The notes below the pieces were generated by a model. The model made no database searches. It was not told where the DNA came from and saw only the letters and a list, made by a program, of their open reading frames with translations. A stretch of DNA of 64,000 nt, from positions 1 to 64,000 of the forward strand of contig NIVC01002192.1 in the NCBI GenBank assembly GCA_002269645.1. Reading direction: 5' to 3'. Shown here piece by piece: positions 1 through 49,135 of this stretch. Every line of letters begins with the position of its first letter. Position 1 is the stretch's first letter. The stretch comes from Macrostomum lignano (taxonomy: Eukaryota). The position numbers and the translations under genes were made by a program.

Positions 1-148
1 ACTTTATGTTAACTTATATTTTCCAAGTCAGTAACATTTATTTCCAACACCTCATAGAAATAGTCTTTATCAGAACTTTTCGACTGTAGATTTGAAAATC
101 CATTTTCAAATATAAGGATTTTTTGGTCTCAAGTTGCAAGAGGGCAGC

Positions 149-1675
149 TTACGAACAGGACGGAAGAGTACATACATAGCTGGTCCGTGGTCCACTGGAA
201 GTGTAGCTAGAATAAGTGGGATAGCTGCTGGAATAGTATGAACTGCTTCCGCACGATGGCAGACTCCATACATAGCTGGTCCGTGGTCCACTGGAAGTGT
301 AGCTAGAATAAGTGGGATAGCTGCTGGAATAGTATGAACTGCTTCCGCACGATGGCAGACTCCATACGTAGCTGGTCCGTGTCCACTGGAAGTGTAGCTA
401 GAATAAGTGGGATAGCTGCTGGAATAGTATGAACTGCTTCCGCACGATGGCAGACTCCATACGTAGCTGGTCCGTGGTCCACTGGAAGTGTAGCTAGAAT
501 AAGTGGGATAGCTGCTGGAATAGTATGAACTGCTTCCGCACGATGGCAGGCTCCATACGTAGCTCGTCCGTGTCCACTGGAAGTGTAGCTAGAATAAGTG
601 GGATAGCTGCTGGAATAGTATGAACTGCTTCGCACGATGGCAGACTCCATACGTAGCTCGTCCGCGGTCCACTTGAATAGCTAGGGTAGTAGCTAGAATA
701 GCGAGAGTAGTAGCTAGAGTAGCTAGGGTAGTAGCTAGAATAGCGAGAGTAGTAGCTAGAATAGCGAGAATAGCTGGGGTAGTAGCTAGAATAGCGAGAA
801 TAGCTTGGGTAGTAGCTGGAATAGCGAGAGTAGTAGCTAGAATAGCGAGAATAGCTTGGGTAGTAGCTGGAATAGCGAGAATAGCTGGGGTAGTAGCTGG
901 AATAGCGAGAATAGCTGGGGTAGTAGCTAGAATAGCGAGAATAGCTGGGGTAGTAGCTGGAATAGCGAGAATAGCTGGGGTAGTAGCTAGAATAGCGAGA
1001 ATAGCTGGGGTAGTAGCTGGAATAGCGAGAATAGCTGGGGTAGTAGCTAGAATAGCGAGAATAGCTTGGGTAGTAGCTAGAATAGCGAGAATAGCTTGGG
1101 TAGTAGCTGGAATAGCGAGAATAGCTGGGGTAGTAGCTGGAATAGCGAGAATAGCTGGGGTAGTAGCTGGAATAGCGAGAATAGCTGGGGTAGTAGCTAG
1201 AATAGCGAGAATAGCTGGGGTAGTAGCTAGAATAGCGAGAATAGCTGGGGTAGTAGCTAGAATAGCGAGAATAGCTGGGGTAGTAGCTAGAATAGCGAGA
1301 ATAGCTTGGGTAGTAGCTGGAATAGCGAGAATAGCTGGGGTAGTAGCTGGAATAGCGAGAATAGCTGGGGTAGTAGCTGGAATAGCGAGAATAGCTGGGG
1401 TAGTAGCTGGAATAGCGAGAATAGCTGGGGTAGTAGCTGGAATAGCGAGAATAGCTGGGGTAGTAGCTGGAATAGCGAGAATAGCTGGGGTAGTAGCTAG
1501 AATAGCGAGAATAGCTGGGGTAGTATCCGCTTGAACCGTAGCGACCCGATCCATAGCTTCCGATTCCGCCTGATCCGTAGCCGGAGCCGATACTCCTGGC
1601 TTGTGTGAGACCCTGGCAGCTGCCAGTGACAGCGGCAAGCAGCAACAGCACTCCGAGACAAAGCTTGATGTCCAT
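149..1675 (-). CDS. Intronless secreted Tyr/Ser-rich tandem-repeat protein (signal peptide, Gly/Ser/Tyr linker, about 27 x YSRYSSYYPS, about 5 x 32-aa Cys/Trp-containing repeat); three 1-nt deletions break the frame in the C-terminal repeats
   Basis: ATG at 1675 starts a hydrophobic signal peptide (MDIKLCLGVLLLLAAVTGSCQG). A 30-bp coding repeat spans about 690-1522. A 96-bp repeat (TSSGPRTSYVWSLPSCGSSSYYSSSYPTYSSY) spans about 160-675. Comparing copies shows single-base losses at about 631, 571 and 381. Restoring them gives one frame ending SYVCTLPSCS-TAA (149-151). TATAAAA lies about 70 bp upstream. Confidence 0.8.
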
Positions 1676-3943: not shown

Positions 3944-5022
3944 GACAATGAGAGAGGGTCAGTTGTCCATGTTAGTGCCTGACAATGAGAGAAGGTCAGT
4001 TGTCCATGTGAGTGCCTGACAATGAGAAGGTCGGTTGTTCATGTGAGTGCCTGACAATGAGAGAAGGTCAGTTGTCCATGTGAGTGCCTGACAATGAGAA
4101 GGTCAGTTGTCCATGTTAGTGCCTGACAATGAGAGGGTCAGTTGTTCATGTTAGTGCCTGACAATGAGAGGGTCAGTTGTTCATGTGAGTGCCTGACAAT
4201 GAGAGGATCAGTTGTCCATGTGAGTGCCTGACAATGAGAGGGTCAGTTGTTCATGTTAGTGCCTGACAATGAGAGGGTCAGTTGTCCATGTGAGTGCCTG
4301 ACAATGAGAAGGTCAGTTGTTTATGTTAGTGCCTGACAATGAGGTCAGTTGTTCATCTTAGTGCCTGACAATGAGAAGGTCAGTTGTTCATGTTAGTGCC
4401 TGACAATGAGAGGGTCAGTTGTTCATGTGAGTGCCTGACAATGAGAGGGTCAGTTGTCCATGTTAGTGCCTGACAATGAGAGGGTCAGTTGTTCATGTGA
4501 GTGCCTGACAATGAGAAGGTCAGTTGTCCATGTTAGTGCCTGACAATGAGAGGGTCAGTTGTTCATGTGAGTGCCTGACAATGAGAAGGTCAGTTGTCCA
4601 TGTTAGTGCCTGACAATGAGAAGGTCAGTTGTCCATGTGAGTGCCTGACAATGAGAGGGTCAGTTGTTCATGTTAGTGCCTGACAATGAGAGGGTCAGTT
4701 GTCCATGTGAGTGCCTGACAATGAGAAGGTCAGTTGTTTATGTTAGTGCCTGACAATGAGGTCAGTTGTTCATCTTAGTGCCTGACAATGAGAAGGTCAG
4801 TTGTTCATGTTAGTGCCTGACAATGAGAGGGTCAGTTGTTCATGTGAGTGCCTGACAATGAGAGGGTCAGTTGTCCATGTTAGTGCCTGACAATGAGAGG
4901 GTCAGTTGTTCATGTGAGTGCCTGACAATGAGAAGGTCAGTTGTCCATGTTAGTGCCTGACAATGAGAAGGTCAGTTGTCCATGTTAGTGCCTGACAATA
5001 AGAAGGTCAGTTGTCCATGTTA
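3944..5022. repeat. 35-bp minisatellite (about 30 copies)
   Basis: Unit gcctgacaatgagagggtcagttgtccatgttagt. Rare variants recur about 417 bp apart (4321 and 4738), indicating a higher-order duplication. Confidence 0.95.
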
Positions 5023-5449
5023 GTGCGTCTTTGAGTTCAGCAAAATGGCCTTTGATTTGAAGCAGTTCACAAGCCCCCAGCGACTAAGTGCGAGCCCTGA
5101 TAACCATCTAAACTGACACGTACAGCTTTCGTGCTGGTCCTTGCACGGTTTACCCCAGTGTTGAATCTGGGAAAGTGAAGCAGAAGGAAGCCACACGCTG
5201 CAGAATTCAAACACTGATACGGGAAGCTTTCAGTTTATTAGCACTAAACTGGCAATATCCCACCTTCTGGACTTCCGAGTTGCAAAGGATTTTGTTTACC
5301 TGCATAATTAAAAAAATATTGCACGCCAGGAAAGCATAAAATACGGTTGCGTTCTTACTGTTTTCTTTTGAGATTAAATGGGATTTAACCATAGACAGTT
5401 GGGTCATTTGAAACTTCACATTAGCAACCTGGCCCGCTCAGGGTCTGTG

Positions 5450-5996: not shown

Positions 5997-6761
5997 TCAG
6001 AGGCCCAGCAGGCGCGGAACGTCAGCCAGGGAGCTCACAATGTGCGTGGCGCCGGCCTCTCGAAGCAGCTCGGCGTTGCCGACCCCGCTGAGGACGCCGA
6101 CGCAGGCGGCAAGTCCGGCGTTGCGGCCAAGTCGCATGTCGGTGCCGGTGTCTCCCACCATGACGGCGCGGGCGGGCGCGGTGCCGAGCCGGGAGCAGAC
6201 GGAAAGCGCCGCGCTGGCGTGCGGCTTCGGCTGGACGTCCGGGTCGTCACCGCAGGCCGCCGCACCCACGAGGGGCTGCAGGCCGCCGCGGTCGAGCGCC
6301 GCTTCCGTCTCGGCCCGGTCGTCCGAAGTGCAAAGGCCGATGAGGAGCCCCGCAGCGGTCAGTCGCTCGAACGTCTCTCTGGTGCCATCAATGAAGCGAA
6401 GGCGACCGCGGTCGAGCTCGCAGCCGAAGGTGACGCGGCGCACGGTGGCCTCGGCGAGCTCGGCGCTGACACCGCTCTCAACGGCCAGCTGCACGAGCGC
6501 ATCAGCAATGTCCTTCTTGGTGCCCTCTGCTAGCAGACCGGGGCCCGTGCGCCGGGTCTCGGGGTCCACACCGAGGCGCCGCAGGATGGGCAGTTGAAGG
6601 TCCTGACGGTCTAGAAGCCGGGTGATCTCGCTGGCCACCTCCTCGGCCCAGGGCGACCACATGGCATGGAAACAGACCACCGTGCCGTCCTTGTCAAACA
6701 GCACGCAGTTGATGTCGCTGAGAGGCTGCTCCAGCTCCAGCTGCGGGGACTCCACGGGCAT
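5997..6761 (-). CDS. HAD-superfamily hydrolase (phosphoglycolate phosphatase-like, class IA), intronless
   Basis: Motif I VLFDKDGT, motif II CTSD, motif III KP and motif IV MVGDTGTD are all present. First ATG at 6761 (MPVESPQ), preceded by an acceptor-like cctcag. Stop at 5997. Confidence 0.88.
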   Translation of the reverse strand: MPVESPQLELEQPLSDINCVLFDKDGTVVCFHAMWSPWAEEVASEITRLLDRQDLQLPILRRLGVDPETRRTGPGLLAEGTKKDIADALVQLAVESGVSAELAEATVRRVTFGCELDRGRLRFIDGTRETFERLTAAGLLIGLCTSDDRAETEAALDRGGLQPLVGAAACGDDPDVQPKPHASAALSVCSRLGTAPARAVMVGDTGTDMRLGRNAGLAACVGVLSGVGNAELLREAGATHIVSSLADVPRLLGL

Positions 6762-7375
6762 TTTTCTGAGGCTTATCAGGCGCACACTTTGAGAGGCCGA
6801 GACGGGAAGCTCAGCGCAGGCTGGGCGCTTCGTTTAAAGTTGCGGAGCTCCGCTGTCCAGCTAGGATTCTTGGTCACGTGATCCGAATGGAAGCCGAGAA
6901 ATCTGCAGCAAGTTGCTCAGGAGAACTTTTCCTTCCTCTCTGCACTCTGTCCCCTGAGTACACTGGTGCACTCTGAATCGGTCGGGCAGGCAGAGATGGA
7001 GAAAGCGCTGAGCTGCTCCTGTGCGGGAGGATCTGGATTGAACTGGCTGGGGAGGCTGTGATGAAGGATGAAGGCTGGGCTTTCAAGTGCTCTGCTTGCC
7101 TGCCTAAGAAGTGACAAGATGCACTTAGGAGTGGAAAAATGCTTTGAGTTCGTCAGCTTTCTCAAGTATTTCTCCCCCGCGCACAGTCTACTGCGGAAGA
7201 AGTGCTGCAAATGTATTTGAAAATCTCTGGAATCAACCTACTGATTTTTATATATTTAAATTTGTTTAAATTCACTAAATTTTACTATGGAAAACTATTT
7301 TTCATCGCGTTGATGCTCGAATTGTGACAGTAACCAATGAAAATAATTTAATGATATGTGAAGCAGTTGTAGAGT

Positions 7376-9600
7376 CTAAGAGCCGTCCGAAGTGCCGGCC
7401 TGGCCATTCTTAGGCGAAGAAGGCCGGCGCCACCTGAGGCCGCCGCCTCCGTCGGCGTCGGACCGGAAGCCGGCCGCAATGGCCTCGATGGGGCGGCCCT
7501 TGGTCTCGGGCAGGCAGCAGAACAGGAACAGCAGGAAGGCGGCCGTCAGGACGGAGAACGGCAGGAACAGCAGGCTACCCAGGTGCTTCACGAGCACCGG
7601 GAACACCAGGCCGACCGCGAAGTTGGCCAGCCAGTTCACCAGCACTCCGATGGCGTTGGCCGCCGACCGCGCCTCCTGCTGGAACATCTCCGAGATCATC
7701 AGCCAGGGAATGGAGCCCGGGCCCAGAGCGAAGAACACCACAATGAGCAGGGCAAAGCAGATGCTGGCGTAGGTGAGAGCGCCGGCCGGCGTGGCGGCTG
7801 CGCTGCGGCTGTGCAGGCTGAAGCAGATGGTGAAGCCCACGGAGCTGACGAGCACGCCGAGCAGGCCGGTCAGGTGCAGGCAGCGTCGGCCCACCCGGTC
7901 CATCAGCGGCACCGTCACGCCGGTCATCGCCACCATCACGCAGCCGACAGCCACCGTGGCAAACTTGGACGCCTGCGGACTGGCACCGGCCGCCTCGAAC
8001 AGGTCGCTGGAGTAATAGAAGATCACGTTGATGCCGGACAGCTGCTGGGACAGGTGCAGCACCAGGCCGATGAGCAGCGGCCGGCGGAGCTCCGGCTGGG
8101 AGCAGAGCTTTGCCGCCGTTGCTGACGATGAGGCCGACGACCCAGTGGACCGCTCGGCGTCGATCTCGGCCAGCTCCGCGTCCACGAAATCGTGACCCCG
8201 TAGAGTGGCCAGCGCGGACCGGGCTGCTGCCTCGGAGCGCCGGGTGAGCAGGAGGTGGCGCGGGCTCTCCGGGCAGCAGGGCAGCAACGCCAGCTGCAGG
8301 AGGCAGGGCGCGGCTGACAGGGCGAACAGCAGCGGCCAGAGGCCCGGCCGCCCCAGCAGCGAGTCGGTGCTGGCTACCTGGGACAGCAGAAGTCCGGACA
8401 CCACGCCGAGCTGGTTGAGCACGCCGAAGCCGCCGCGGAGTCGCCTGGGCGCGGTCTCGCTGATGTAGAGCGGCACAACGCTGGTGTACACGGCGCTGCA
8501 GAACCCGGTGGCGAGGCGACCCAGCACCAGCAGCTCTGGACTGGAGGCGACGCTCGACAGGCTGCAGGCGATGGCGGCCGCGATGCCGAAGCCGCTGTTT
8601 CCGAGCAGTGCGCGGGAGCGGCCGAGCCTGCAGGAGAATGGGGAAGCCAGGTGGTGCGCTGTAGCTGTGCAGCACGGACTTTTGTAACTAAAGGCAGGCA
8701 GTCACTGCCATCCAAAAAGCGAAAAGTGCTTCCTTAGGCCCAGTAGGACTTTGCACAGCGGGTTCAAATTCTACTACTTATCAGTAAAATACACTGCCCA
8801 CTTGTCTCTATGCAGATGTGCCAGTAGTGCGCTATAGTAGTACGCGAGACCAGGATTGTTTGTATTATTTTGTGCGCTGCATGAGCTCAGGAATGTTCTG
8901 CCGAGCCCGAGGAGATAAGTATTCTCATAATTAATACAATGTGCAGCCGGCTACTGCAGCGAGTGCGAACCAGATTGCGCCAGTGCAGGTCAGCACGTTG
9001 TTGGAAGCACGTGTTTCAAGTGAGTCACTGCTCTGACAAGCCTTATGAACATTTCCGACAATTTTGTGTGCGTAAGACAGTCAACAAGTTCTTGTTCCCC
9101 TGCCTGTCGATACCAAATACATGTAGGCTTTCGGTACTCAGGAAAGATTCAAAGCGATCATGCAGATCAACAAAATAATTACACATTAGAGACTCCCAGC
9201 GGAGACTCACTCAACCTCAAATCAGAACACAGAACTCGACCTGCCCACACCTGTCAGCGAGGCAGCCGCCAGTCAGGGCGCCGCCCATGCCTCCAATGGC
9301 GAAGATGGAGACCACGAGAGACCACAGCAGCTCCAGCTGGTAGTCGCTCAGCTGCCGGTCGAACCGGTCCGCCACAGACTGGTTGAGAAAGCTGACGATG
9401 CCGTCCTTGGGGTTGTTGATGACGCCGGTGTTCCAGCCGAAGTGGACGGCGCCCCAGAAGGCGGCCAGCACGGAGAGCGCCAGGCGCCAAGTGACTCGGT
9501 CGCGACTGTCCTGAACTGCGCTGACAGCCGCTTCGGGGGCGGCTTTGGGGGCCGCCTGAGAGGCGGAGAGCAGCTTCTGTTCGGAACGCTCGCTCTCCAT
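7376..9600 (-). CDS. SLC2A/GLUT-family facilitated sugar transporter (MFS), 2 exons, about 533 aa
   Basis: Exons 9600-9251 and 8627-7376. The intron is GT..AG and joins DR|LGRSRALL in phase 2. Motifs: GWNTGVINNP, GRLATG, PLYISETAP, PESPR, SQQLSGINVIFYY, GPGSIPW, PETKG. Confidence 0.93.
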
Positions 9601-17135: not shown

Positions 17136-20100
17136 ATGAGCAATAAAAAGTTTCAAGAATTCATAAAACAGCTGGATGGCCTCTGGGAGGTAAGCTAGAA
17201 CTACTCATTGTCTAAGTGCTGCATATTATATTAATTCTGGGATCAGCAGCCAACTGTAACTCCCCATCTGCTTGCAGATTAACAAAGTGAAGTTCAAAGA
17301 GGAGTTTGTCAGCACTGAGGCAAAGAGTGGCCTGCATCAATTTGAGTAAGTCGCTGCCTTGAGTAAGTCAGTGAGACACTGAAGTTAATCAATGTAGTTA
17401 TTAAGTGTTTTGCTATTATTTTTGCATCACTAATAAGATGATGAGGCATTTGCATTATCTGACGATGAGTATAGTTACTCTTGCCATTTACCCAAAGCAT
17501 TGGTAGCATACGAGCGTATTTTATAAGCAATTATCTGCACTATTGTGCACTGCTCAAAATTGGTGGTTTGGATCATTACTGCTATCTGTCTTTTTAACAC
17601 CATTCTTGCCTTTTAATAAGATTCAGAAAGAATTCCCATGCAGCCTTCGGTTGATCTTCTCATTAGCCTCCATCATCATGCCTCTATCATATAATCCTCA
17701 TCATATTTATGCCCATGTATCTCCATCATATCTATGCCCATGTATCCCTATCATATTTATGCCCATGTATCCCCATCATATCTATGCCCATGTATCCCCA
17801 TCATATCTATGCCCATGTATCTCCATCATATCTATGCCCATGTATCCCCATCATATTTATGCCCATGTATCCCCATCATATCTATGCCCATGTATCCCCA
17901 TCATATCTATGCCCATGTATCCCCATCATATCTATGCCCATGTATCCCCATCATATCTATGCCCATGTATCTCCATCATATCTATGCCCATGTATCCCCA
18001 TCATATTTATGCCCATGTATCCCCATCATATCTATGCCCATGTATCCCCATCATATCTATGCCCATGTATCCCCATCATATCTATGCCCATGTATCCCCA
18101 TCATATTTATGCCCATGTATCCCCATCATATCTATGCCCATGTATCCCCATCATATCTATGCCCATGTATCTCCATCATATTTATGCCCATGTATCCCCA
18201 TCATATCTATGCCCATGTATCCCCATCATATCTATGCCCATGTATCCCAATCATATCTATGCCCATGTATCTCCATCATATCTATGCCCATGTATCCCCA
18301 TCATATTTATGCCCATGTATCCCCATCATATCTATGCCCATGTATCCCCATCATATCTATGCCCATGTATCTCCATCATATCTATGCCCATGTATCCCCA
18401 TCATATTTATGCCCATGTATCCCCATCATATCTATGCCCATGTATCCCAATCATATCTATGCCCATGTATCCCAATCATATCTATGCCCATGTATCTCCA
18501 TCATATCTATGCCCATGTATCTCCATCATATCTATGCCCATGTATCTCCATCATATCTATGCCCATGTATCCCCACCATATCTATGCCCATGTATCTCCA
18601 TCATATCTATGCCCATGTATCTCCATCATATCTATGCCCATGTATCCCCACCATATCTTTCCCCATTTATCCCCATCATATATCCCTATCATGATTTATC
18701 CCCATCATATACCTCCATCACATATATCCAATCACATATCCCCACATCATCATGTATCTCCCCCTCTCATCGCAGGCACCTGAAGGACCCCGACTGGCGC
18801 GTGAGTTTCCGCGAGACTCCGTCGGGCTGGTCGGTGCAGTGGTTCCCGCCGGACGGCGACTCCGACGAGGCCCGGGGCGCGCCGCCGACGGGCTCGGAGC
18901 TGTGCCGCCTGTTCGAGCTCACCCAGCTCGACCTGGAGGAGGCCGGCCCCGAGGTGGTCCGCGGCCGGGCCAAATTCGCGGCCGTCTTTTCCAGCGCCGA
19001 CCGCGAGGTGTCCGCGCCGGCCAAGTTCATCTGCGAGAAGAAGACCGGCCGGCAGCTGCCTAAGAAGCTGCGGTTCCAGTTCGGCTCGCTGCAGATCACC
19101 AAGGTGAGCAACCTGTGCACCACGTCTCCGCCTCACTGGGTTGCTGGGACCCAGCCTCATGGGTCACATAGTGGGATTTCCCCAGCCTCTATGAGTCACG
19201 GAGGGGTATTTCCCCAGCCTCTATGAGTCACGGGGTGGTATTTCCCCAGCCTCTGAGTCACGGAGGGGTATTTCCCCAGCCTCTATGAGTCACGGGGTGG
19301 TATTTCCCCAGCCTCTGAGTCACGGAGTGGTATTTCCCCAGCCTCTGAGTCACGGAGTGGTATTTCCCCAGCCTCTATGAGTCACGGAGTGGTATTTCCC
19401 CAGCCTCTATGAGTCACGGAGTAAGGATTTCCCCAGCATGGCTATGAGTTACGGAGTAAGGATTTCCCCAGCCTCTATGAGTCACGGAGTGGTATTTCCC
19501 AGCCTCTATGAGTCACGTAGTGGGATTTCCCAGCCTCTATGAGTCACGTAGTGGGATTTCCCAGCCTCTATGAGTCACGTAGTGGGATTTCCCAGCCTCT
19601 ATGAGTCACGTAGTGGGATTTCCCAGCCTCTATGAGTCACGGCGTGGGATTTCCCCAGCCTCTAGGGAAATACGGAGTGGGATTTCCCCAGCATGGCTAT
19701 GAGTCACGGAGTGGGATTTTCCCAGCCTCTATGAGTCACGGAGCCTTCCATACCCAAGCCACCGTCAGTAATCAGAGTTTTTCACCGCTACTCGTGAGTA
19801 GCCTGTTGCGAACTTGTACTTTAAACCTTACAAATTTCGATTCTTTCGCCCACCCCGCCTGCCCTTAGCTGAGCCGCTGCCTTCCCGCCTACAGCGACTG
19901 TGCGGTGTCGCTTCTGCCGCTGCTGGAGGAGCGGTTCCGCTGCGACCTCACCCTGCGCGGCTCAGACGGCAGCGAGTTCAGTTGCCATGGCGACGTGATC
20001 CGCCTCGTTGCCGGGGACGCCGCCCTGGCTTGGCTGCAGCAGCCGCCCGGCCGCGACCCGCAGCTGCTGCGCGTCTTCCTGCATTTCTGCTACGCCGCCG

Positions 20101-23100
20101 CTCTGCCGCAGGGCCTCGGCGCCGAGGAGTCTCGCGAGCTGATGGAGCTGGCCCAGCCTCTTGCCTGCCCTGCCTTCCGAGCGGCTCTAAAGCGGCACCT
20201 GCGGCGGGCCGGAAGCAGCGCCCGCGTGGCCAGGGAGCTGCAGGCTACTGAGACTGCGCTGGCCCGCCACATCGATGTGAGAGGGCTGCCGTTGATACCC
20301 CTGCTTGTCTGTTTTGGTCACTGGATCCCCCCTTGAGCCAGTTAGTCACTGGATCCGCCCCCCCTGAGCCAGTTAGTCACTGGAATCCGCCCCCCTGAGC
20401 CAGTCACTGGATTCGCCCCCTGAGCCAGTCACTGGATCCGCCCCCTGAGCCAGTCACTGGATCCGCCCCCTGAGCCAGTTAGTCACTGGGATCCGCTCCC
20501 CTGAGCCAGTTAGTCACTGGGATCCGCCCCCCTGAGCCAGTCACTGGATCCGCCCCCTGAGCCAGTTAGTCACTGGATCCGCCCGCTGAGCCAGTTAGTC
20601 ACTGGATCCGCCCCCTGAGCCAGTTAGTCACTGGATCCGCCCCCTGAGCCAGTTAGTCACTGGGATCCGCCCCCCTGAGCCAGTCACTGGATCCGCCCCC
20701 TGAGCCAGTCACTGGATCCGCCCCCTGAGCCAGTTAGTCACTGGGATCCGCCCCCCTGAGCCAGTTAGTCACTGGGATCCGCCCCCTGAGCCAGTTAGTC
20801 ACTGGGATCCGCCCCCTGAGCCAGTTAGTCACTGGATCCGCCCCCTGAGCCAGTTAGTCACTGAATCCGCCCCCTGAGCCAGTTAGTCACTGAATCCGCC
20901 CCCTGAGCCAGTTAGTCACTGAATCCGCCCCCTGAGCCAGTTAGTCACTGAATCCGCCCCCTGAGCCAGTTAGTCACTGAATCCGCCCCCTGAGCCAGTT
21001 AGTCACTGAATCCGCCCCCTGAGCCAGTTAGTCACTGAATCCGCCCCCTGAGCCAGTTAGTCACTGAATCCGCCCCCTGAGCCAGTTAGTCACTAAATCC
21101 GCCCCCTGAGCCAGTTAGTCACTGAATCCGCCCCCTGAGCCAGTTAGTCACTGGATCCGCCCCCTGAGCCAGTTAGTCACTGAATCCGCCCCCTGAGCCA
21201 GTTAGTCACTGAATCCGCCCCCTGAGCCAGTTAGTCACTAAATCCACCCCCTGAGCCAGTTAGTCACTGAATCCGCCCCCTGAGCCAGTTAGTCACTGAA
21301 TCCGCCCCTTGAGCCAGTTAGTCACCGGATCTGCCCCCCATCCGCCCCAGGACCTGCGGGACCCGTTCTCGCTGGCAGCAGAGCCGGGCCGCCTGGCCGG
21401 CCAGCTGGAGACCTTCCTGCGCGACTGCCTGGCCGCGGCCGCCCGCCTGCTGCTGTGCGCGGCCCTGTACGAGTCCATGCCTGGCGCTGAGCGGTCGCGG
21501 GTGCAGCAGCTGTTCCGGGACCGGGCCGGCCGTCTGGCCGAGTCGCAGGCGCAGCTGCTCCACCGGCTGCACTCGGCGATGCGGGCGGTACCGGCCGAGC
21601 GGCGGGCCGAGCTGAGCCAGCTGTGCCTGGACCGGATGGAGCCGCTGGTCTCCGGGCTGCCGGAGTGCGCGCTGCAGCTTGCGGACCTGCTGAGCTCCGG
21701 CTGCCGGCAGGGCCTCCTGAGCGGCGGCGGGGTGCTGCTGTTCAAGGACTGGCGGGCGCTGCTGTCCGCGCCTAAAAAGTGAGCACCTTTTGCAGTCAGG
21801 AGTTGGCTTGAATACCGTTAGCTGCAGTACCTTTATGGGGCTCAAGGGAGTTTTGAAATTATTGTAAAGAATCTGCTCTCAATAGAATTTCAGTAGCGTC
21901 TCGCTACTACTATTAGTAGTTTCCTGCCTGGCATTTTAACCCCCTCTCAAACCCGCCGGCTGCAGGTGCTCCACCCTCCGCACCCAGCTGGAGGCCATGC
22001 GCTCCGAGTACCGCCAGGCCGGGCCCGAGCGCCTGTCCGAGCTGTTCGACCACCTGCTGGCCGAGCTGGCCGGCCTGGACAACCGGCAGCGGCCGTCAGG
22101 TGGCGGCGCCAGCGGCGGTTTTCGCGTCTCCGCCCGCTGGGAAAAGCGGGCCAAGAAGGCGGCCAGGCGGGCCGGCCTGGCGGTGCGGCTGCTCCGCTCC
22201 GTGCGCGGCGAGCCGGCGGCTGCGGAGTTTTGGCGCCGTCTGGCCGCCTGCCTGCCGCGTGGCTGCCACGAGGCGCTCGGCCTGCTGCGCGAGCTCGCCC
22301 TGCTGCCGCCCGACTTCGCCGCTCCCGACGCCGCCGACTCTGCCGCGGTGGCCGCTTCTGATATGGACGCCGCGGCGGCCTCCGTCTCCGCCGTGTCTCT
22401 GGAGGAGGCCGAGGACGCGTCTGGCGCCTCCGCTTCCGCCACTGCGACTGCCGCTCCTGCCGCTGTTATGCCCAACGAGCTGCAGGTTCGTTTTGATGAC
22501 CCTGCCTTGTTGCTAGGGCCTCTGGATATGAGATTTTTGCTAGGGTCTCTGGATGTGAGAGTGTTGCTAGGGTCTCTGAAAATGAGATTGTTTCCAAGGC
22601 CTCTGGATATTGGATTGTTGCTAGGGACTCTGGATGTGAGATTGTTGCTAGGGTCTCTGGATGTGAGATTGTTGCTAGGGTCTCTGAAAATGGGATTGTT
22701 GCCAAGGCCTCTGAATATTGGATTGTTGCTAGGGTCTCTAGATGTGAGATTGTTGCTAGGGTCTCTGAAAATGGGATTGTTGCCAAGGCCTCTGGATATT
22801 GGATTTTTGCTAGGGCCTCTGGATGTGAGATTGTTGCTAGGGGCTCTAAATGTGAGATTGTTGCTAGGGTCTCTGAAAATGGGATTGTTGCCAAGGCCTC
22901 TGGATATTTGATTGTTGCTAGGGCCTCTGGATGTGAGATTGTTGCTAGGGGCTCTAAATGTGAGATTGTTGCTAGGGGCTCTGGATGTGAGATTGTTGCT
23001 AGGTTCTCTGAAAATGGGATTGTTGCCAAGGCCTCTGGATATTGGATTGTTGCTAGGGCCTCTGGATGTGAGATTGTTGCTATGGGCTCTAAATGTGAGA

Positions 23101-27730: not shown

Positions 27731-29275
27731 CTGACATCTACATAAGTTTGTGAAGCGCTAGTAGTATTTTTTAGCTTAGTATCTTAGCGTTGGGGAGCCA
27801 AAAATGCAGTACAAGTTTTGTAATAAACTAGTAGTTTTAAAAGTAAAAAGTAAAATAAAAGTAGATTTTAAGTACGAAAGTCCTTATTGTGTAAGGTAAT
27901 TATAATATTTTGTTTATACACACTAGAAAGATTGTACATTTTTAACTTATACAGTTTCTTCGAAACGCATAATTGAGCAGCAATTAAAATAATTAGTCAA
28001 CTACCCGACGAGGAATAATTGGCTAGCTAGTTACTCATGAGTCATATCCAACTAAAACTGGCCATTTTAACTGGAAAAGCTAGATAGGCAACTCACTTCA
28101 TCCAGTTGATACTACCTATTCTTTCTTCATTTAACTCGTATTGAAGGACTTATTTATCTAGCTCCAGTTTCTAAACTGAATAGAAACCTGGCAGATAAAT
28201 TACTTCTTGTTATACATAAAAATGATTTTCGGATGAAATTTTATTGATGCATTACTAAACTATTTTACCCTCATACTCTACAATTGCTCAGATTTGTTGA
28301 GTAGGTATAACATATTTTATAACAACTTGCTTAACTTTTGCACTCCATGTCTTTTTATTGCACTTTCATTTATTTTGTTAGCTTAATATTTTTTGCTTTG
28401 CAATCTTATAATGTACCTTTATTGTTAAATTTTGCTATAATGCTTAAACCTTCATATAATATAAGACCAAATTTCATTATATAGCCATAGGCAATAGTTA
28501 GATAGAGTTTAATATTTTAATATTGTTATTTTTTCTAGAATTTATGTTAGCATTAGTATAGGATAGGCCCTAGGATTTTTCATAGTTACCAAATATGTAG
28601 CATATGTATCATTATAATACTATTGATTTCAAAATATATATAGTTACATTTATATTTTATCCAGTAATTTACTTTATGATCTCTTATGTAGAAAATATAC
28701 TTAGCAACATAGAAAAGTTGCCATCATAGAAGATTTTATCTGTGGTTGCAACTTAGCAACACCATATTATGAATATGGTAGACTTGAGTTAAGAGATAAA
28801 GTGGAGTGGTGTGCAAGGGTTAGATGGATTAAAGCTACCCCAATCAGTTTTCTTGTATCTTTTTTAGAATAGTCTAAGAGAAATTGTTTATTTGTACATA
28901 GTGTGGCAAATTTTCGATGTTGCTAAGTATACTTTTATATCAAAAAGGAAATGCTTGTAGAAAAGTTTTGGATTATTTAAAGCCTGCTTGTTATTATTTT
29001 ATTGCATAAAAATATCATATTTAATTATTTAGGCCTAGAAAGTGTATATAATAAAAATTATTATAATCATTTAATATTTGATAGTATAGTGGTCAATAGT
29101 ATGTAGCTTTTTATTTTAGAATATTTTATAATAATAATAGTTTTTAACCTAGCCATCAATCACATTTTAATCTGTCATGGATTTGACATTTTCTAGCTTT
29201 TATTTTATTTTGAATTACTTTTATGAAATAAATCTTAACATCCTCAATATCCCTCAGACAGCAGCATCCCAAGAG

Positions 29276-37321
<8,046 letters not shown>

Positions 37322-37323
<2 letters not shown>

Positions 37324-38782
37324 CTGTTGTGACTGGGTCATGGCCCTCCCACACTGTTGTGACTGGGTCATGGCCTCCCACACTGTTTTGACTGGGTCAT
37401 GGCCCTCCCACACTGTTGTGACTGGGTCATGGCCTCCCACACTGTTTTGAATGGGTCATGGCCCTCCCACACTGTTGTGACTGGGTCATGGCCCTCCCAC
37501 ACTGTTGTGACTGGGTCATGGCCTCCCACACTGTTTTGAATGGGTCATGGCCCTCCCACACTGTTGTGACTGGGTCATGGCCCTCCCACACTGTTTTGAC
37601 TGGGTCATGGCCTCCCACACTGTTGTGACTGGGTCATGGCCCTCCCACACTGTTGTGACTGGGTCATGGCCTCCCACACTGTTGTGACTGGGTCATGGCC
37701 CTCCCACACTGTTGTGACTGGGTCATGGCCCTCCCACACTGTTGTGACTGGGTCATGGCCTCCCACACTGTTTTGAATGGGTCATGGCCCTCCCACACTG
37801 TTGTGACTGGGTCATGGCCCTCCCACACTGTTGTGACTGGGTCATGGCCTCCCACACTGTTTTGAATGGGTCATGGCCCTCCCACACTGTTGTGACTGGG
37901 TCATGGCCCTCCCACACTGTTTTGACTGGGTCATGGCCTCCCACACTGTTGTGACTGGGTCATGGCCCTCCCACACTGTTGTGACTGGGTCATGGCCCTC
38001 CCACACTGTTGTGACTGGGTCATGGCCTCCCACACTGTTGTGACTGGGTCATGGCCTCCCACACTGTTGTGACTGGGTCATGGCCTCCCACACTGTTTTG
38101 ACTGGGTCATGGCCTCCCACAATGTTTTGAGCGGTTCATGGCCTCCCACACTGTTGTGACTGGGTCATGGCCTCCCACACTGTTTTGACTGGGTCATGGC
38201 CCTCCCACACTGTTGTGACTGGGTCATGGCCCTCCCACACTGTTGTGACTGGGTCATGGCCTCCCACACTGTTTTGACTGGGTCATGGCCTCCCACACTG
38301 TTTTGAGTGGGTCATGGCCTCCCACACTGTTGTGACTGGGTCATGGCCTCCCACACTGTTTTGACTGGGTCATGGCCTCCCACAATGTTTTGAGCGGTTC
38401 ATGGCCTCCCACACTGTTGTGACGGGGTCATGGCCTCCCACACTGTTTTGACTGGGTCATGGCCCTCCCACACTGTTGTGACTGGGTCATGGCCCTCCCA
38501 CACTGTTGTGACTGGGTCATGGCCTCCCACACTGTTTTGACTGGGTCATGGCCTCCCACACTGTTTTGAGTGGGTCATGGCCTCCCACACTGTTGTGACG
38601 GGGTCATGGCCTCCCACACTGTTGTGACGGGGTCATGGCCTCCCACACTGTTTTGACTGGGTCATGGCCCTCCCACACTGTTGTGACTGGGTCATGGCCT
38701 CCCACACTGTTTTGACTGGGTCATGGCCCTCCCATACTGTTTTGACTGGGTCATGGCCTCCCACACTGTTTTGACTGTGTCA
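37322..38782. repeat. 29/30-bp minisatellite beginning at the ATP2C1 stop codon
   Basis: Unit ctgttgtgactgggtcatggc(c)ctcccaca, with local 89-bp (30+30+29) periodicity. Confidence 0.95.
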
Positions 38783-39584
38783 TGGAGATATTTTGGCGAG
38801 TTCGTGGCCTTAGTTGGCCCCTTGGTTCGGGCCATGACCCAGTTTTTGCTATATTAAATATTATTAAATGTGCTGTTTTCAAAATATTTTAATTCTCCAT
38901 AATTTCACTCAGCCCCTGCCCTGCTATGCAGCCAGGAATTGCATCGATTTTCGCACGTTTTTTTCGAATCAAAATTTTCAGTACATCTGCACTTTTATTC
39001 CACAGCCAGTCTTCCATGTTTATTGCCTGTCCTGCATAATAAAACTGCTGCTGCTTTTACAGCAAATATTTACAGCTATTTACAGCTGTCCTGCATGCCT
39101 GTCTATTTATACCATTGTTGCTATGCTCAACTCTTTGTCTCGGTGGCTGCTTTCTGCTTGCCAATAAATAACACGCTGAGTAGTTCTTTGAGTCGGGTCC
39201 GGGACAGCTCTGTCAGGTCGGAGCAATCGATCGACCGTGTACTTTATAGATGTAGTGCGCCCAGGCTCCGGCCGTGCTAGTCACCTGTACTTTTATTTTT
39301 CTACACAGGGCATGATGCATTTTTTATATTCAATTGTTTATTAATGATTATGGAAAGTTCTCACTGTACTTTGTTGGTGTCTGTGCATGCCGGGCTGCGC
39401 GCCGTGTTTGGCCGCAAAATTTCTGCTATTCTCATAATATACAGTGGATATTGAGCATGCTTTGATGCTGCACTGGGACTTCATCTGATTTCAAGTTGTT
39501 TGAGTCATTTCTCATGGGGTTTGAGACCACGGGCTCTTAGCGATTGTTCATTTACTTTCTGGGGGAATAGTATAGTGAGCTTCT

Positions 39585-39900
39585 GTTGCAGTTTCTATGC
39601 GGTTTTTATGCAATTGCTGTGTAGTTTCTATGCAATTGCTGTGTAGTTTCTATGCAGTTGCTGTGTAGTTTCTATGCAGTTGTTGTGTAGTTTCTATGCA
39701 GTTGTTGTGTAGTTTCTATGCAGTTGCTATGAAGTTTCTATGCAATTGCTGTGTAGTTTCTATGCATTTGCTTTGTTCTCGTATTTTATATGCAGTTCGT
39801 TGCCAAGCCGCTTTTGAGATTACTATGCAAATGCTAAACCGTTTTTATGAGGTTACTATGCAGTTGCTAAGCAGTTTCTACGAGGTTACTATGCAGTTGC
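39585..39900. repeat. Degenerate 22-bp repeat upstream of RABGGTB
   Basis: Unit gtgtagtttctatgcagttgct, decaying towards 39900. Confidence 0.8.
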
Positions 39901-39944
39901 TTACACAAGCGTTGCCATCCGAACGCGCCCGCAAATTTCCGCAG

Positions 39945-41971
39945 CATCGCCCAGCCACCGACATTTCCCTGCCGGCGGACGCGCCGAAGCAGCTGCTGCC
40001 GGAGAAGCACGCCGACTTCCTGTTGCAGTACTGCAGCAGCCAGGACAACTACGAGTACGTCATGACCGAGTACCTGCGCATGTCCGGCCTCTACTGGACC
40101 GCCAGCGCCCTGGACCTCCTTGGCCGCCTGCCCGACCTGCGACAGCGGATGGACGCCGCCGCCTTCTTGCGGGACTGCGCCAGGCCGATGGCGGCTACGG
40201 GCCGGCGCCCGGACACGACAGCCACCTGCTGTACACCCTGAGCGCCGTGCAGGTGAGCAGGTGAGGGTGCGGCGGAATGGGTGCGGCTGGGGTGTCAGGT
40301 TAGGACTGGGGTGTCAGGTTAGGACTGGGGTGTCAGGTTGGGACTGGGGTGTCAGGTTGGGACTGGGGTGTCAGGTTGTGACTGGAGTGTCAGGTTAGGA
40401 CTGGGGTGTCAGGTTGGGACTGGGGTGTCAGGTTGTGACTGGAGTGTCAGGTTAGGACTGGGAAGTCAGGCTAGGACTGGGGTGTCAGCCTGGGACTGGG
40501 TGTCAGGTTGGGACTGGGGTGTCAGGTTGGGACTGGGGTTTTCGTTGTGTCAGGATGGGACTGGGGTGTCAGGTTGGGACTGGGGTTTCGGGGTGTCAGG
40601 ATGGGACAGGGGTGTCAGGTTGGGACTGGGGTACGAGTATAAGGTTGGGACTGGGGTGTCAGCCTGGGACTGGGGTGTCAGGCTAGGACTGGGGTGTCAG
40701 CCTGGGACTGGGGTGTCAGCCTGGGACTGGGGTGTCAGCCTGGGACTGGGGTGTCAGCCTGGGACTGGGGTGTCAGCCTGGGACTGGGGTGTCAGGTTGG
40801 GACTGGGGTGTCAGGCTGGGACTGGGGTGTCAGGACGAAATTTGGGATGTCAGGATTGGGATCTTGTCTCACACAATTGTCAGCTCCAGCCCTCCGCCTA
40901 CCCCAGGTGGCTCTGCTGTTCGACCTGCGGGACTCCCTGGACGCCGGGGCCATCGCGGGCTTCGTCCGCGGCCTGCAGCGGCCTGACGGCAGCTTCCAGG
41001 GCGACCGGTGGGGCGAGGTGGACACCCGCTTCAGCTTCTGCGCGCTGGCCGCGCTGTTCCTGCTGGGGCTGGGCGACCGCCTCGACGACCTTGTCGACGC
41101 TCGCGCCGCAGGCGACTTCGTGCTGACCTGCGCCAACTGGGACGGCGGCTTCGGCACCCGGCCGGGCAGCGAGTCGCATTCCGGACAGGTGCGGATCTTG
41201 CCTGGCTACTCACAGTAGGCAGTGCAGTGTCCCAGCTACTCACAGTAGGCAGTGCAGTGTCCCAGCTACTCACAGTAGGCAGTGCAGTGTCCCAGCTACT
41301 CACATTAGGCAGTGCAGTGTCCCAGCTACTCACAGTAGGCAGTGCAGTGTCCCAGCTACTCACAGTAGGCAGTGCAGTGTCCCAGCTACTCACAGTAGGC
41401 AGTGCAGTGTCCCATCCCAGCTACTCACAGTAGGCAGTGCAGTGTCCCATCTCAGCTACTCACAGTAGGCAGTGCAGTGTTCCAGCTACTCACAGTAGGC
41501 AGTGCAGTGTCCCAGCTACTCACCGCAGGCGCCCGCCCGCAGGTGTACTGCTGCATCGGCGCGCTGTCCATCCTGGGCCGCCTGCACGAGCTGGACGTGG
41601 ACCGCACGGCGCTGTGGCTGGCGGAGCGGCAGCTGGCAAGCGGAGGGCTGAACGGCCGGCCGGAGAAGCTCCCGGATGTGTGCTACTCCTGGTGGGTGCT
41701 GGCCTCCCTGGCCATGCTCGGCCGGCTGTCCTGGATCTCCGGCGAGCGGCTGCTGCGCTTCGTGTGCGCGGCGCAGGACCCGGAGGCTGGCGGCATCGCC
41801 GACCGGCCCGGCGACCTCTGCGACCCCTTCCACACCCTGTTCGGCCTGGCCGGCGCTTCCCTCCTGCGGCTGGGCGGTGACTCGCTGAAGGCCATCAACC
41901 CGACTTTCTGCCTGCCAGTTGACTGTCTGGACAGGCACGGACTGCGGCTGCCGCTCTGGACTGGCGACTGA
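39945..41971 (+). CDS. RABGGTB: Rab geranylgeranyltransferase (GGTase-II) beta subunit; initiator Met not adjacent in the genome; 1-nt frameshift in the first exon
   Basis: Exons 39945-40252, 40907-41188 and 41543-41971. Motifs: [86 protein letters not shown]. The first exon is 308 nt where 309 are needed; the missing base is at about 40185-40186 (agg cc gat ggc). Confidence 0.93.
40285..40860. repeat. 19-bp G-rich intronic minisatellite (RABGGTB)
   Basis: Unit ggactggggtgtcaggttg. Confidence 0.93.
41205..41525. repeat. 30-bp intronic minisatellite (RABGGTB)
   Basis: Unit ctactcacagtaggcagtgcagtgtcccag. Confidence 0.95.
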
Positions 41972-43269: not shown

Positions 43270-44432
43270 TGTCGCCTGTGTGCGCGCATAGCATTGCCCT
43301 GGCAACCCGAGACCTGGCAGTGACAGCAGTTAACAGCAACACACAGATAGGCAAATTCAAATGTGCCCGCTTTTAAATAAAAGTAGCGCCACGCTCCTGC
43401 CCCAAAGCTGCTTCTTTACAGTGACCTGCCTATCTGCCTTCCTACTTGTCTGCCAACCTTACCTGCCCGCCAGCTTACCTGTCTGCTCAGACTAACCGAG
43501 TCAAAGGTAATCCCAACATTCTTTATTCTATTGCAACTTTAGCTTTTGACCAAACGGGCTGAGATGATAACTTGCCGGTCGAGTCGGTCAGAAACATCGA
43601 AACATCCCATCCAGGTCCCCTTGGACTTCTTTGGAATAAACGGGGATAAAATGGGGATTTCACGAGAACTCACCGCTTAAGCTCCACGGCCAAGGTAGCA
43701 AACTTTCACTGAGTATTGAAGATGTGCTAAAAGTACATTATGCAACGCCAGCCAATTGGATAGACGACGCAAATACAAACATAGCATTTGCTCCAATTGT
43801 TCCAATGCGATGGGCCATGACTGAGGAATTCTTATAGCAGGCCAGCTTCCCATAGCAGTGCCAGCTTCCCATAGCAGTGCCAGCTTCTTATAGCAGTTCC
43901 AGCTTCTAGCAGTGCCAGCTAATTCCCATAGCAACAACGGCATCCATTAGCAGTGCCGCCACTCACTCTGCTCCGGTTTCTACTCAATGCTTAATGCGCG
44001 CGCACCTCTGACTCTCGGGGAAAAAACCCGGGTTAGATTTATTTTTTGACCGCACTGATTCGGTGGTTGTGCGCAAGATTTCACCTGGGGCTCGAGCGAT
44101 TCTCACACATGATTGCCAAACCCCACGGCACCGTGGTGCAGCTTGACAATGAAAAAGTCAGGACCGCTGTGCACCCTTTGTGACTTTGAGTTTGTGTGCG
44201 AGCTCAGGGGTCAGCAGAATGTACATGACTGCTGGCTTTCTTGCCGGCCTCTGATCGACTGCAGCCTTGATTAGTGTCAGTTCTAAAGCCACTTTTGATG
44301 CATTTCCAAATCTCACTGCTTTTTCCTCTATGTCAAAGTAAATTCAATGAAAAGCCCCTTCTCAAACATCACAAACCCAAACACGGACGAATTTCAGGTG
44401 TGTTCAACTCGACTGACGCTCAATTCTTTCCG

Positions 44433-46118
44433 ATGGCCGCTGCGGAGCAAATGCGAACTGCGCTGGAGGCCGACGACTGCGAGCAGCTGCTAAAGCTGTG
44501 TCGGCAGCTGGACTCCAACCTGACAGTTTCGGCCGGCTACTTTGAAGGTCCGCCTCACGTGAGAGAAATTTCGGCGGCTCACCACGTCGCTAGCAAGCCG
44601 TACGGACTCGACTGTCTGGAGGTGCTGATCGACCGGTTCGGAGCTGCATGTTTGACATGCAGAGACGAGTTCAACTACACACCTGTGCACTTGGCCGCCA
44701 TTAAGCAGAGCCAGGACAGTCTGAAGCTCATTCACACGACTCTTGGCAGCGACTGTTTTTATGAAAAAGGAAGATTTGGTCGCTCAGTGATTCACTGCGC
44801 TGCCATGAATAAGCATAGCAACAAGGCACTCAAGTGGCTGATCGGTGAGTTCGGGTCAGACAATCTAATGGCGAAGGATGACAATGGTTCGACAGTCGTT
44901 CATCTATCAGCTGAGTTTCAGAGCTCAGATTCGATGGAATTCATTAAATCAATGCTCGGTTCCGACTGCTTCCGTCAGAACGGGTGGCTTGGTCGCACCG
45001 CAGTTCACTGTGCTGCTTGTAACAAGGTCTCAAACTCGTCGCTCAAGTGGCTGATCGATGAGCTCGGCTCAGACTCTCTCATGGCTGCCCAGTTTCAGAG
45101 TTCAGATTCAATGGAATTCATTAAATCGAAGCTCGGTTCCGACTGCTTCCGGCAGCACGGACCCAAAGGACGCACCGCAGTTCACTGTGCTGCTTGTAAC
45201 AAGGTTTCAAACTCGTCGCTCAAATATCTAGTCGATGAGATCGGTTCAGACTCTCTCATGGAGAAGGATGACAATGGATCGACAGTCGTTCATCTGGCCG
45301 CTGTGTTTCAGAGCTCAGATTCGATGCAGTTTATAAAATTAAAGATCGGTTCCGACTGCTTCCGTCAGCACGGACGGCTTGGACGCACTGCAGTTCACTA
45401 TGCTGCTTATAACGAGGTCTCAGACTCGTCGCTCAAGTGGTTGATCGGTGAGCTCGGCTCAGACTCTCTCGTGGAGAAAGATTACATCGGATTGATGGCT
45501 TGTCACCTTGTCGCAGCTCATCAGGGTGAAAACTCCATGGACTTGATGAAGAGCCTGCTCGGAGTTAAAAGGTTCCCTTTGCGTCATCGTTTTGGCCAAA
45601 CTGCAGCTCATTTTGCTGCACTAAATACAAGGAGCAATGCAACACTGGCCTGGTGTGTCAGAGAACTGGGCTCCCAGTGCCTGACTCACGTAGATAAAGA
45701 CGGCAACAATCCACTACACAATGCTGCTCAGCATCAAGATGAGAAGTCGATGCAGCTGGCGGTGAGCTCACTCGGACCGGACTGTCTCAAGCTGCCAGGT
45801 GAGAAGCAGCGAACTGCAGTTCACTTCGCGGCCATCAACACCAACAGCGTCTCTGCGCTAAGGTGGATTGTCGGTCAGCTGGGACCCGACTGTCTGAAGC
45901 TGAGGGACGACGAGGGCATCACGGCTGCGCACCTGGCAGCTCAGCACCAAAGCGAGGACTCGCTGCGGCTCATCAGGGACTCGCTGGGCGTCGCCGCTTT
46001 CGACTTGCAGGACCAGCAGGGACAGTCGGTGGCGGACTATACGAAGAAGAACAACCGGTCGGAGCGGATGCTGGGCTGCATCGCCGAGCTGCGGGAGGAG
46101 GAGAGGCTAAATAGGTGA
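44433..46118 (+). CDS. Ankyrin-repeat exon of ANK-kinase paralogue A (561 aa if the intron is retained; if spliced, stops 15 codons into exon 2)
   Basis: ATG 44433 (MAAAEQMRTAL) follows an atttcag acceptor. Many TPVHLAA/TAVHCAA-type ankyrin repeats. The ORF is open, with only in-frame indels relative to paralogue B. Donor AG|GTGAGC at 46114/46115 overlaps the TGA. Confidence 0.85.
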   Translation: MAAAEQMRTALEADDCEQLLKLCRQLDSNLTVSAGYFEGPPHVREISAAHHVASKPYGLDCLEVLIDRFGAACLTCRDEFNYTPVHLAAIKQSQDSLKLIHTTLGSDCFYEKGRFGRSVIHCAAMNKHSNKALKWLIGEFGSDNLMAKDDNGSTVVHLSAEFQSSDSMEFIKSMLGSDCFRQNGWLGRTAVHCAACNKVSNSSLKWLIDELGSDSLMAAQFQSSDSMEFIKSKLGSDCFRQHGPKGRTAVHCAACNKVSNSSLKYLVDEIGSDSLMEKDDNGSTVVHLAAVFQSSDSMQFIKLKIGSDCFRQHGRLGRTAVHYAAYNEVSDSSLKWLIGELGSDSLVEKDYIGLMACHLVAAHQGENSMDLMKSLLGVKRFPLRHRFGQTAAHFAALNTRSNATLAWCVRELGSQCLTHVDKDGNNPLHNAAQHQDEKSMQLAVSSLGPDCLKLPGEKQRTAVHFAAINTNSVSALRWIVGQLGPDCLKLRDDEGITAAHLAAQHQSEDSLRLIRDSLGVAAFDLQDQQGQSVADYTKKNNRSERMLGCIAELREEERLNR

Positions 46119-48980: not shown

Positions 48981-49121
48981 CGCCTGCACTCTCAGAAAGC
49001 AAAGATAAGTCCCATTGTTCTCACTGACCTGAATCCGAAAGCACTGGTTGAGCCATCCGCTCATTTATAACTGTACATGTATAGGTCCCCTGCCCTACCT
49101 GTCTTCAGGCTCCTCAGTCAC

Positions 49122-49135
49122 GTTGCCATGGCAAC
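49122..49135. promoter_or_regulatory. Perfect palindromic RFX X-box motif
   Basis: GTTGCCATGGCAAC, about 750 bp upstream of the ATG at 49884. Confidence 0.5.

Follow-up and report, generated by a model that had tools for sequence, protein, structure and literature searches.

The window analysed here comprises 64,000 nucleotides (nt), positions 1-64000 of the 172,951-nt contig NIVC01002192.1 of the Macrostomum lignano assembly Mlig_3_7 (GCA_002269645.1). Its last 19,500 nt (44501-64000) showed 100.000% identity to the contig range 44501-71353. At the start of this contig, positions 149-1675 of the minus strand carry a candidate gene for a secreted protein made largely of Ser and Tyr. Its conceptual product of 509 amino acids (aa) would consist of a signal-peptide-like segment, a non-repeat linker rich in Gly, Ser and Tyr, a long decapeptide array, a short junction and a second array of 32-aa units carrying Trp and Cys. 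The first-pass annotation of this DNA had given the same features and coordinates, and our parsing agrees with that inventory and places it on the minus strand (Table 1). The conceptual stop codon lies 148 nt from the contig end.

The decapeptide YSRYSSYYPS accounts for most of the gene. Tandem Repeats Finder (TRF) reports it as a 30-nt array at 675-1525 with 28.6 copies, and parsing resolved 25 full and 3 partial units, in line with the previous count of about 27 copies with 4 Tyr and 4 Ser per 10 aa. Every full unit contains 4 Tyr, 4 Ser, 1 Pro and 1 Arg, and the isoelectric point (pI) of the array is 9.5. Each decapeptide uses 2 TAT and 2 TAC codons for Tyr and 2 TCY and 2 AGC codons for Ser; that both codon boxes share the Ser load fits a bulk product, but is only suggestive. 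The tryptic peptide YSSYYPSYSR, with a computed mass of 1271.546 Da, would occur 24 times per molecule of the conceptual product.

The mature conceptual protein has 487 aa (57 kDa, pI about 9.4, grand average of hydropathy -1.08) and is composed mainly of Ser (39%), Tyr (31%), Pro (9%), Arg (7.4%), Gly (4%) and Thr (3.7%). It is devoid of Lys, His, Asp, Glu, Asn, Phe and Met, leaving Arg as the sole charged residue, and its 7 Cys and 5 Trp are confined to the C-terminal array. If expressed, it would be among the most tyrosine-rich natural proteins, with 31% Tyr overall and 40% in the repeat.

At the N-terminus, the 22-aa segment has a single Lys (K4) in its n-region, a 12-residue hydrophobic core (LCLGVLLLLAAV) with a Kyte-Doolittle peak of 3.09, and small residues at -3/-1 of the predicted cut, with C-Q-G just before it. 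AlphaFold2, run with no alignment, predicted a helix at residues 3-25 with a predicted local distance difference test (pLDDT) score of 81-85, falling to about 28 in the chain after it. The signal peptide proposed earlier is thus borne out as a prediction, and this start makes a convincing sequence-based case that the product would enter the classical secretory route. Beyond the helix no fold was predicted (pLDDT about 28 and 38 in the single-sequence models). Because these models are single-sequence and no alignment exists, the low scores are weak evidence.

The locus is compact and has a single exon with a TATA box at 1744-1749, as expected from its earlier description as a TATA-driven intronless gene. 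Transcription would probably start about 30 nt 3' of TATAAA, giving a 5' untranslated region (UTR) of about 40 nt. There is an in-frame stop 9 codons upstream of the start codon. Some 40-60 nt past the conceptual stop, what is presumably the 3' UTR contains a perfect 9-nt inverted repeat, TTTGAAAAT-CC-ATTTTCAAA, at 91-110.

Table 1. Features of the candidate gene, in window coordinates.
Feature	Position	Strand	Details
Candidate gene	149-1675	-	Start of contig NIVC01002192.1, M. lignano Mlig_3_7
TATAAA	1744..1749	-	74 nt 5' of ATG; putative promoter element
Start codon ATG	1673..1675	-	Kozak context AATCATGG, A at -3, G at +4
Signal-peptide-like segment MDIKLCLGVLLLLAAVTGSCQG	1610..1675	-	22 aa; hydrophobicity profile and AlphaFold2 helix
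Non-repeat G/S/Y-rich linker LTQARSIGSGYGSGGIGSYGSGRYGSSGYYPS	1514..1609	-	
YSRYSSYYPS array	680..1513	-	25 full units and 3 partial units (7, 7 and 4 aa)
Junction YSSGPRT	659..679	-	Joins both arrays in one frame
96-nt / 32-aa repeat SYVWSLPSCGSSSYYSSSYPTYSSYTSSGPRT	182..658	-	5 units; assembled lengths 94, 96, 95, 96 and 96 nt
Frameshift 1, GG to G	631	-	TGCGGAAGC becomes TGCGAAGC; unit 1 against all sibling units
Frameshift 2, CC to C	572	-	GGACCACGG becomes GGACACGG; unit 1 against sibling units
Frameshift 3, CC to C	381	-	GGACCACGG becomes GGACACGG; unit 3, same unit position as frameshift 2
Literal open reading frame (393 aa)	494-1675	-	Stop at 494..496, met in shifted frame
Diverged terminal partial unit SYVCTLPSCS and TAA	149..181	-	
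TAA, stop of conceptual 509-aa protein	149..151	-	
AATAAA polyadenylation signal	37..42	-	109 nt past conceptual stop

The second array was reported by TRF at 171-677, with a 96-nt period, 5.3 copies and 97% matches. Its consensus, SYVWSLPSCGSSSYYSSSYPTYSSYTSSGPRT, carries 1 Trp and 1 Cys per unit. The earlier description of about five copies of a 32-aa unit with one Trp and one Cys, ending in CTLPSCS, was therefore sound in its content, but it overlooked three frameshifts and treated the array as part of one open frame. The three shifts add up to -3, which brings the final 2.3 units, together with the stop at 149-151, back into the frame of the ATG, although there are stop codons on the way. 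An intron bridging the frameshifts was rejected, as no conventional splice sites were seen on reading the sequence, although no formal test was made. Programmed frameshifting was likewise set aside for want of any supporting feature.

By itself, an open reading frame (ORF) through a repeat means little in this window, because stop-free minisatellites are abundant. TRF returned 51 rows with periods of 4-273 nt; about one third of the arrays have a period divisible by 3, and in several no stop occurs in two or three of the frames. The pattern of variation at 149-1675, however, points to coding sequence. The 30-nt units vary only at codon position 3 (TCT/TCC, CCC/CCA/CCT and TAT/TAC), whereas control arrays of 27, 24 and 42 nt within the window vary in all three phases. 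Each of the four variant types of the 30-nt unit leaves the amino acid unchanged in the Y/S frame (expectation 0.20) and changes it in both other frames. The 96-nt units differ by three substitutions, and each of these is synonymous in the corrected frame (expectation 0.226) and non-synonymous in the others. Before its stop, the terminal partial unit differs from the consensus by 5 synonymous and 3 non-synonymous codon differences, and the CCG and ACG codons of the junction are synonymous with CCA and ACC in later units. Moreover, the unit-length indels of the 30-nt array are 9, 9 and 18 nt, all multiples of 3, and the linker, the 30-nt unit and the 96-nt unit, which are unrelated as DNA, are all Ser/Tyr/Pro-rich in a single common frame. 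The variation pattern, the indel lengths and this shared composition together indicate that 149-1675 as a whole evolved as coding sequence in the Y/S frame. We therefore consider it highly probable that the locus is a genuine gene encoding a secreted Ser/Tyr repeat protein, or was one until very recently. An alternative frame (TTPAILAI...) was dropped, since the repeat variants are non-synonymous in it.

The origin of the three frameshifts bears on whether the gene is intact. We regard a consensus error at the contig end as plausible and, on balance, probable. All three events are 1-nt contractions of a two-base run, and the contraction of a short run by 1 nt is a typical long-read consensus error. 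All of them fall in the 631 nt nearest the contig end, and the 1044 nt of coding sequence beyond are free of such events. Furthermore, when read in the corrected frame, the out-of-frame units still show synonymous substitutions only, and synonymous differences also outnumber non-synonymous ones in the terminal unit. Mlig_3_7 is a Canu consensus of PacBio continuous long reads that was polished by Pilon with short reads only, and simple and tandem repeats make up 15% of the M. lignano genome (PMC5730564). Short reads would not be uniquely placeable in 96-nt units that are 97% identical, and this, together with the contig end, is what makes a consensus error plausible. The tandem arrays beside the contig end may also have halted the assembler.

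Alternatively, the frameshifts may be real, and this copy may be an allele cut short or, the DV1 genome being partly duplicated, a duplicate in decay; we consider this possible but less probable. The stops are present in the assembled sequence, and the CC to C contraction occurs at the identical unit position in units 1 and 3, giving rise to a 191-nt higher-order period with 0% indels in TRF; this period is better explained by a single mutation spread by block duplication than by two separate errors. No frameshift at all occurs in the 834-nt decapeptide array, with its about 20 CCCC runs, and Mlig_3_7 holds 180 Mb of duplicated blocks at at least 95% identity (PMC5730564). Such a copy would encode at most 393 aa, made up of the signal peptide, the decapeptides and a tail of nonsense residues, or yield no useful product, and would be compatible with the same ancestral function.

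Searches for relatives of the protein were negative. A word-indexed protein search with a shortened conceptual protein gave 3253 candidates, none of them at E<=0.01. An exhaustive phmmer search with the signal peptide, linker and decapeptide array against 1.84 billion representatives returned 257 matches at E<=1e-3. We inspected 12 of these 257 matches, of which 5 came from the top 11 by E-value and 7 had an identity of 48-59%, and all 12 were unrelated low-complexity proteins with a 10-residue period (such as DRALSEDHSL, SRHSEAIPGS and AKHYPDVTEG) and were rejected as homologues; no identity above 59% occurred among the phmmer matches listed. Neither the conceptual nor the literal protein matched a Pfam family at E<=10, and hence neither has a TES domain, and a search of PDB sequences at E<=10 gave nothing. 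Rfam returned nothing for the whole window, and no paralogue of the repeat gene was found within the 64 kb. Metagenome scans with the DNA pattern and with back-translated peptides gave no match and no relative, and full-text searches for four repeat peptides and for Macrostomum with tyrosine-rich yielded nothing relevant. These sequence, Pfam, PDB and literature searches agree with the previous remark that the repeat belongs to no named family. The gene is best read from its sequence as a lineage-restricted M. lignano gene, and we class its product among the secreted Tyr-rich tandem-repeat material proteins, as a new member with an unusually pure composition.

By analogy with such proteins, we propose with moderate confidence that the product is a granule-stored material precursor hardened by tyrosine oxidation. 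The protein would be disordered and basic and would be packed in secretory granules as a precursor of an extracellular material. Its decapeptide array could act as a dense sticker-spacer polymer in which pi-pi and cation-pi contacts make stickers of Tyr and Arg, with Ser and Pro as the spacers, and such an array would be expected to condense at high concentration. A grammar of Tyr/Arg stickers and Ser/Gly spacers operates in FUS-family condensates. After release, the material could become insoluble through oxidation of its tyrosines, either by a tyrosinase (via 3,4-dihydroxyphenylalanine [DOPA] and quinone) or by a peroxidase (via dityrosine). If the C-terminal frame is intact, its 7 Cys and 5 Trp may add disulfide or thiol-quinone cross-links.

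The biology of the animal offers destinations for such a material. The oocytes of M. lignano build up eggshell granules (PMC4490696), glands for shell and cement lie in the tail region by the female opening (PMC7336406), and the eggshell is so tough that injection requires a piezo drill (PMC5730564). In flatworms, tyrosinase tans shells and capsules by its action on proteins rich in Tyr (PMC5544531, PMC11727788), and tanning of the planarian capsule depends on tyrosinase (PMC5544531). Basic Tyr-rich tandem-decapeptide proteins such as mussel mfp-1 are known to undergo coacervation and DOPA curing (PMC12817120). We favour the material-precursor reading because the Tyr/Arg/Ser composition, flatworm tanning, and the shell granules and glands of M. 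lignano all fit together with it. The eggshell, through the shell granules of the oocyte, or a secretion of the shell or cement glands would be the likeliest destination, followed by rhabdites or other gland products; the eggshell specifically, argued by analogy, is a tentative and individually unlikely choice. In a bolder reading still, the tanned eggshell or a shell or cement secretion of a free-living flatworm without vitellaria would have in this protein its first molecular component, one with no relation to the vitelline proteins with a TES domain in parasitic flatworms. The protein would then combine Arg/Tyr stickers with Ser spacers in an extracellular, FUS-like liquid granule that tyrosine oxidation locks covalently, and its Cys/Trp tail would be a second module for cross-linking. 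We hold this full proposal to be decidedly unlikely.

A close architectural parallel is mfp-1, which has 72 decapeptide and 14 hexapeptide tandem repeats, with DOPA at 10-15 mol% (PMC12817120). In both proteins, a signal peptide is followed by dozens of near-identical decapeptides with Tyr, Pro, Ser/Thr and one basic residue, both are basic overall, and both have shorter variant units interspersed. By analogy, coacervation and curing by tyrosine oxidation may be expected of the M. lignano protein. Its signal peptide and 25 basic decapeptides constitute a resemblance of architecture only: no sequence relatedness to mfp-1 was found at E<=0.01 in the word-indexed search, and the phmmer matches inspected were unrelated. 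The mfp-1 consensus AKPSYPPTYK has 2 Tyr per 10 residues, compared with 40% Tyr in each M. lignano unit. In addition, the M. lignano protein has Arg in place of the Lys of mfp-1 and a separate Cys/Trp repeat domain, and DOPA and hydroxyproline would be hypothetical in it.

The trematode eggshell precursors (vitelline protein B family, TES domain IPR012615; PMC11727788) are likewise flatworm proteins rich in Tyr, and their granule storage and tyrosinase/DOPA hardening are what we propose for the M. lignano protein. One Calicophoron member has a Cys/Pro/Tyr-rich extension (PMC11727788). However, the M. lignano protein has no TES domain, contains 31% rather than 12-15% Tyr, has neither Lys nor His, and consists of tandem repeats with Cys present. 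Membership of this family is ruled out, as no Pfam family was matched at E<=10. M. lignano also has no vitellaria, and its shell granules lie inside the oocyte itself (PMC4490696).

Tubeworm cement includes the basic Gly/Tyr-rich, DOPA-containing Pc/Sa-1 and the phosphoserine-rich Pc/Sa-3 (PMC12817120). Like the M. lignano protein, these are secreted low-complexity proteins dominated by Tyr, Ser or both. They are stored as condensates in gland granules, which for the M. lignano protein is only proposed. The latter differs in being a basic chain that combines high Ser with high Tyr and has almost no Gly in its repeat, and it has no poly-Ser runs, S-x-E sites or homology to them. The low-complexity [G/S]Y[G/S] domains of the FUS family also show Tyr spaced by Ser, Arg as partner sticker, motifs such as YSSY and SYS and the disorder that is predicted for the M. 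lignano chain; the M. lignano repeat differs from them in having no Gln, almost no Gly, about twice the Tyr density and perfect tandem repetition. Because it sits behind a signal peptide, the M. lignano protein would be extracellular, unlike FUS. Finally, the hypothetical protein KJZ79594.1 (P0190) of the fungus Hirsutella minnesotensis ends in a long C-terminal SYSSYYP[EQ][VA] array, shares the hexapeptide YSSYYP and has a period of about 10 residues. It carries acidic residues (Glu, Asp) in its repeats and a large unrelated non-repeat N-terminal region, and was rejected as a homologue in favour of convergent composition. This was the only motif-level analogue found.

Several observations weigh against a functional, tyrosine-hardened product. 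Lys and His are the usual nucleophiles in quinone tanning, and both are absent from the mature protein; cross-links would therefore have to be Tyr-Tyr, DOPA-Cys or DOPA-metal, or be formed with other proteins. The neighbouring genes in the window are housekeeping genes, with no tyrosinase or peroxidase among them, and since no homologue was found, nothing can be transferred by homology. As assembled, the frame is interrupted between the ATG and the conceptual stop, and the literal 393-aa product has a 45-aa out-of-frame tail in place of the Cys/Trp domain. The codon usage, with heavy use of TCT and TAT, has a GC content at third positions (GC3) of 0.63, against 0.66-0.96 in the neighbours. An exact look-up of the literal product found no record in the collection searched. 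This missing record weighs less, because the NCBI annotation of the contig is sparse anyway, with no call at 44.5-54.5 kb although ankyrin and kinase ORFs are clear there.

Other functions have also been considered for a secreted product of this composition. A mucin-like, O-glycosylated protein of mucus, rhabdite matrix or a lubricant, in which Ser/Thr/Pro would carry glycans and Tyr cross-linking would be incidental, is improbable. Ser, Thr and Pro together make up about 52% of the mature protein, the tandem repeats follow a signal peptide, and Cys occurs only at the C-terminal end, as in oligomerising mucins. However, the 31% Tyr is far outside what mucins contain and Thr, at 3.7%, is scarce, and there is no VWD, C8, TIL, cystine-knot or other Pfam domain at E<=10, unlike in a gel-forming mucin.

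A non-structural secreted product, for example a prostate or seminal-fluid protein, is quite improbable in our view. Such proteins are numerous in M. lignano, evolve fast and often have no homologues. The signal peptide and the lack of homologues would suit it, and M. lignano is rich in orphan secreted reproductive proteins (PMC5977470; PMC7336406). Nevertheless, the size, the perfection of the repeats and the 70% Ser+Tyr suggest a bulk material rather than a signalling protein.

Very improbable is a phosphoserine cement or mineral-binding protein that would act as a polyanion like tubeworm Pc-3/Sa-3, which the first-pass annotation had offered as an option. With 39% Ser and interspersed Tyr, the protein superficially resembles Ser/Tyr cement proteins (PMC12817120), but it contains no S-x-E site, its longest Ser run is 3, acidic residues that could prime secretory-pathway kinases are absent, and there is an Arg in every 10 residues. 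In the tubeworm, the acidic proteins have separate basic ones as partners, but the M. lignano chain is itself basic. The phosphoserine option thus receives little support.

That the locus is no gene at all, but a pair of non-coding minisatellites open in one frame by chance, is likewise very improbable: the window's wealth of stop-free arrays, a second minus-strand frame of the target that is open for 393 aa and the unrecorded product would allow it, but the synonymous bias in one frame only, the lack of phase bias in the control arrays, the correctly placed signal peptide, Kozak ATG, TATA box and AATAAA, and the like Ser/Tyr-rich composition encoded in one frame by two unrelated repeat units and a unique linker all argue for the coding gene.

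The secreted repeat protein is a candidate for the structural proteins of the M. lignano eggshell, cement or rhabdites, in a model that has RNA interference, in situ hybridisation and transgenesis. The composition of its decapeptide (Tyr, Ser, Pro and Arg only) would make it a minimal natural case of sticker-spacer condensation with oxidative curing, which may be of use for bio-inspired materials. The existence of such a gene would not greatly surprise specialists; it is of value as a candidate open to testing in a tractable model and as a caveat for annotation. In M. lignano, stop-free minisatellites abound and repeat-rich contig ends may contain indels left uncorrected, and one should expect false repeat proteins as well as real ones that are falsely truncated.

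The remainder of the window holds genes for a HAD hydrolase, a sugar transporter, an SPCA Ca-ATPase and a prenyltransferase subunit, together with ankyrin genes and a kinase. Just upstream of the repeat gene lie a HAD-superfamily hydrolase ORF at 5997-6785 (-) and a large exon of an MFS sugar transporter at 7376-8527 (-), with GC3 of 0.83-0.90. A gene for an SPCA-type secretory-pathway Ca/Mn ATPase at 29177-36285 (+) has at least 4 exons, with GC3 of 0.92 and 0.96 in the two measured. Minisatellites fill its introns: a 24-nt array spans 29859-31028, (CTGT)n spans 31952-32377 and a 14/42-nt array spans 35098-35506. Prenyltransferase (alpha-alpha toroid) exons at 39696-41971 (+), likely of a Rab geranylgeranyltransferase beta subunit, are similarly broken by 19/46-nt and 30-nt minisatellites at 40287-40834 and 41205-41530.

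Ankyrin-repeat genes at 44274-47875 and 57214-61403 (+) are tandem paralogues with internal 213-nt (71-aa) repeats, and each is followed by a kinase-domain exon. The 34 best database matches of the ankyrin ORF are all from M. lignano, which suggests from sequence comparison a lineage-specific expansion of this family. Exact look-ups of the ankyrin ORF and the HAD ORF found no record in the collection searched. NCBI has a gene call at 54501-61353.

Minisatellite pseudo-ORFs of 200-500 aa occur across 3944-64000, for example in a 25-nt array at 17694-18681. Further dense minisatellite stretches lie at 3944-5026, 20317-21338, 37323-38785 and 62557-64000.

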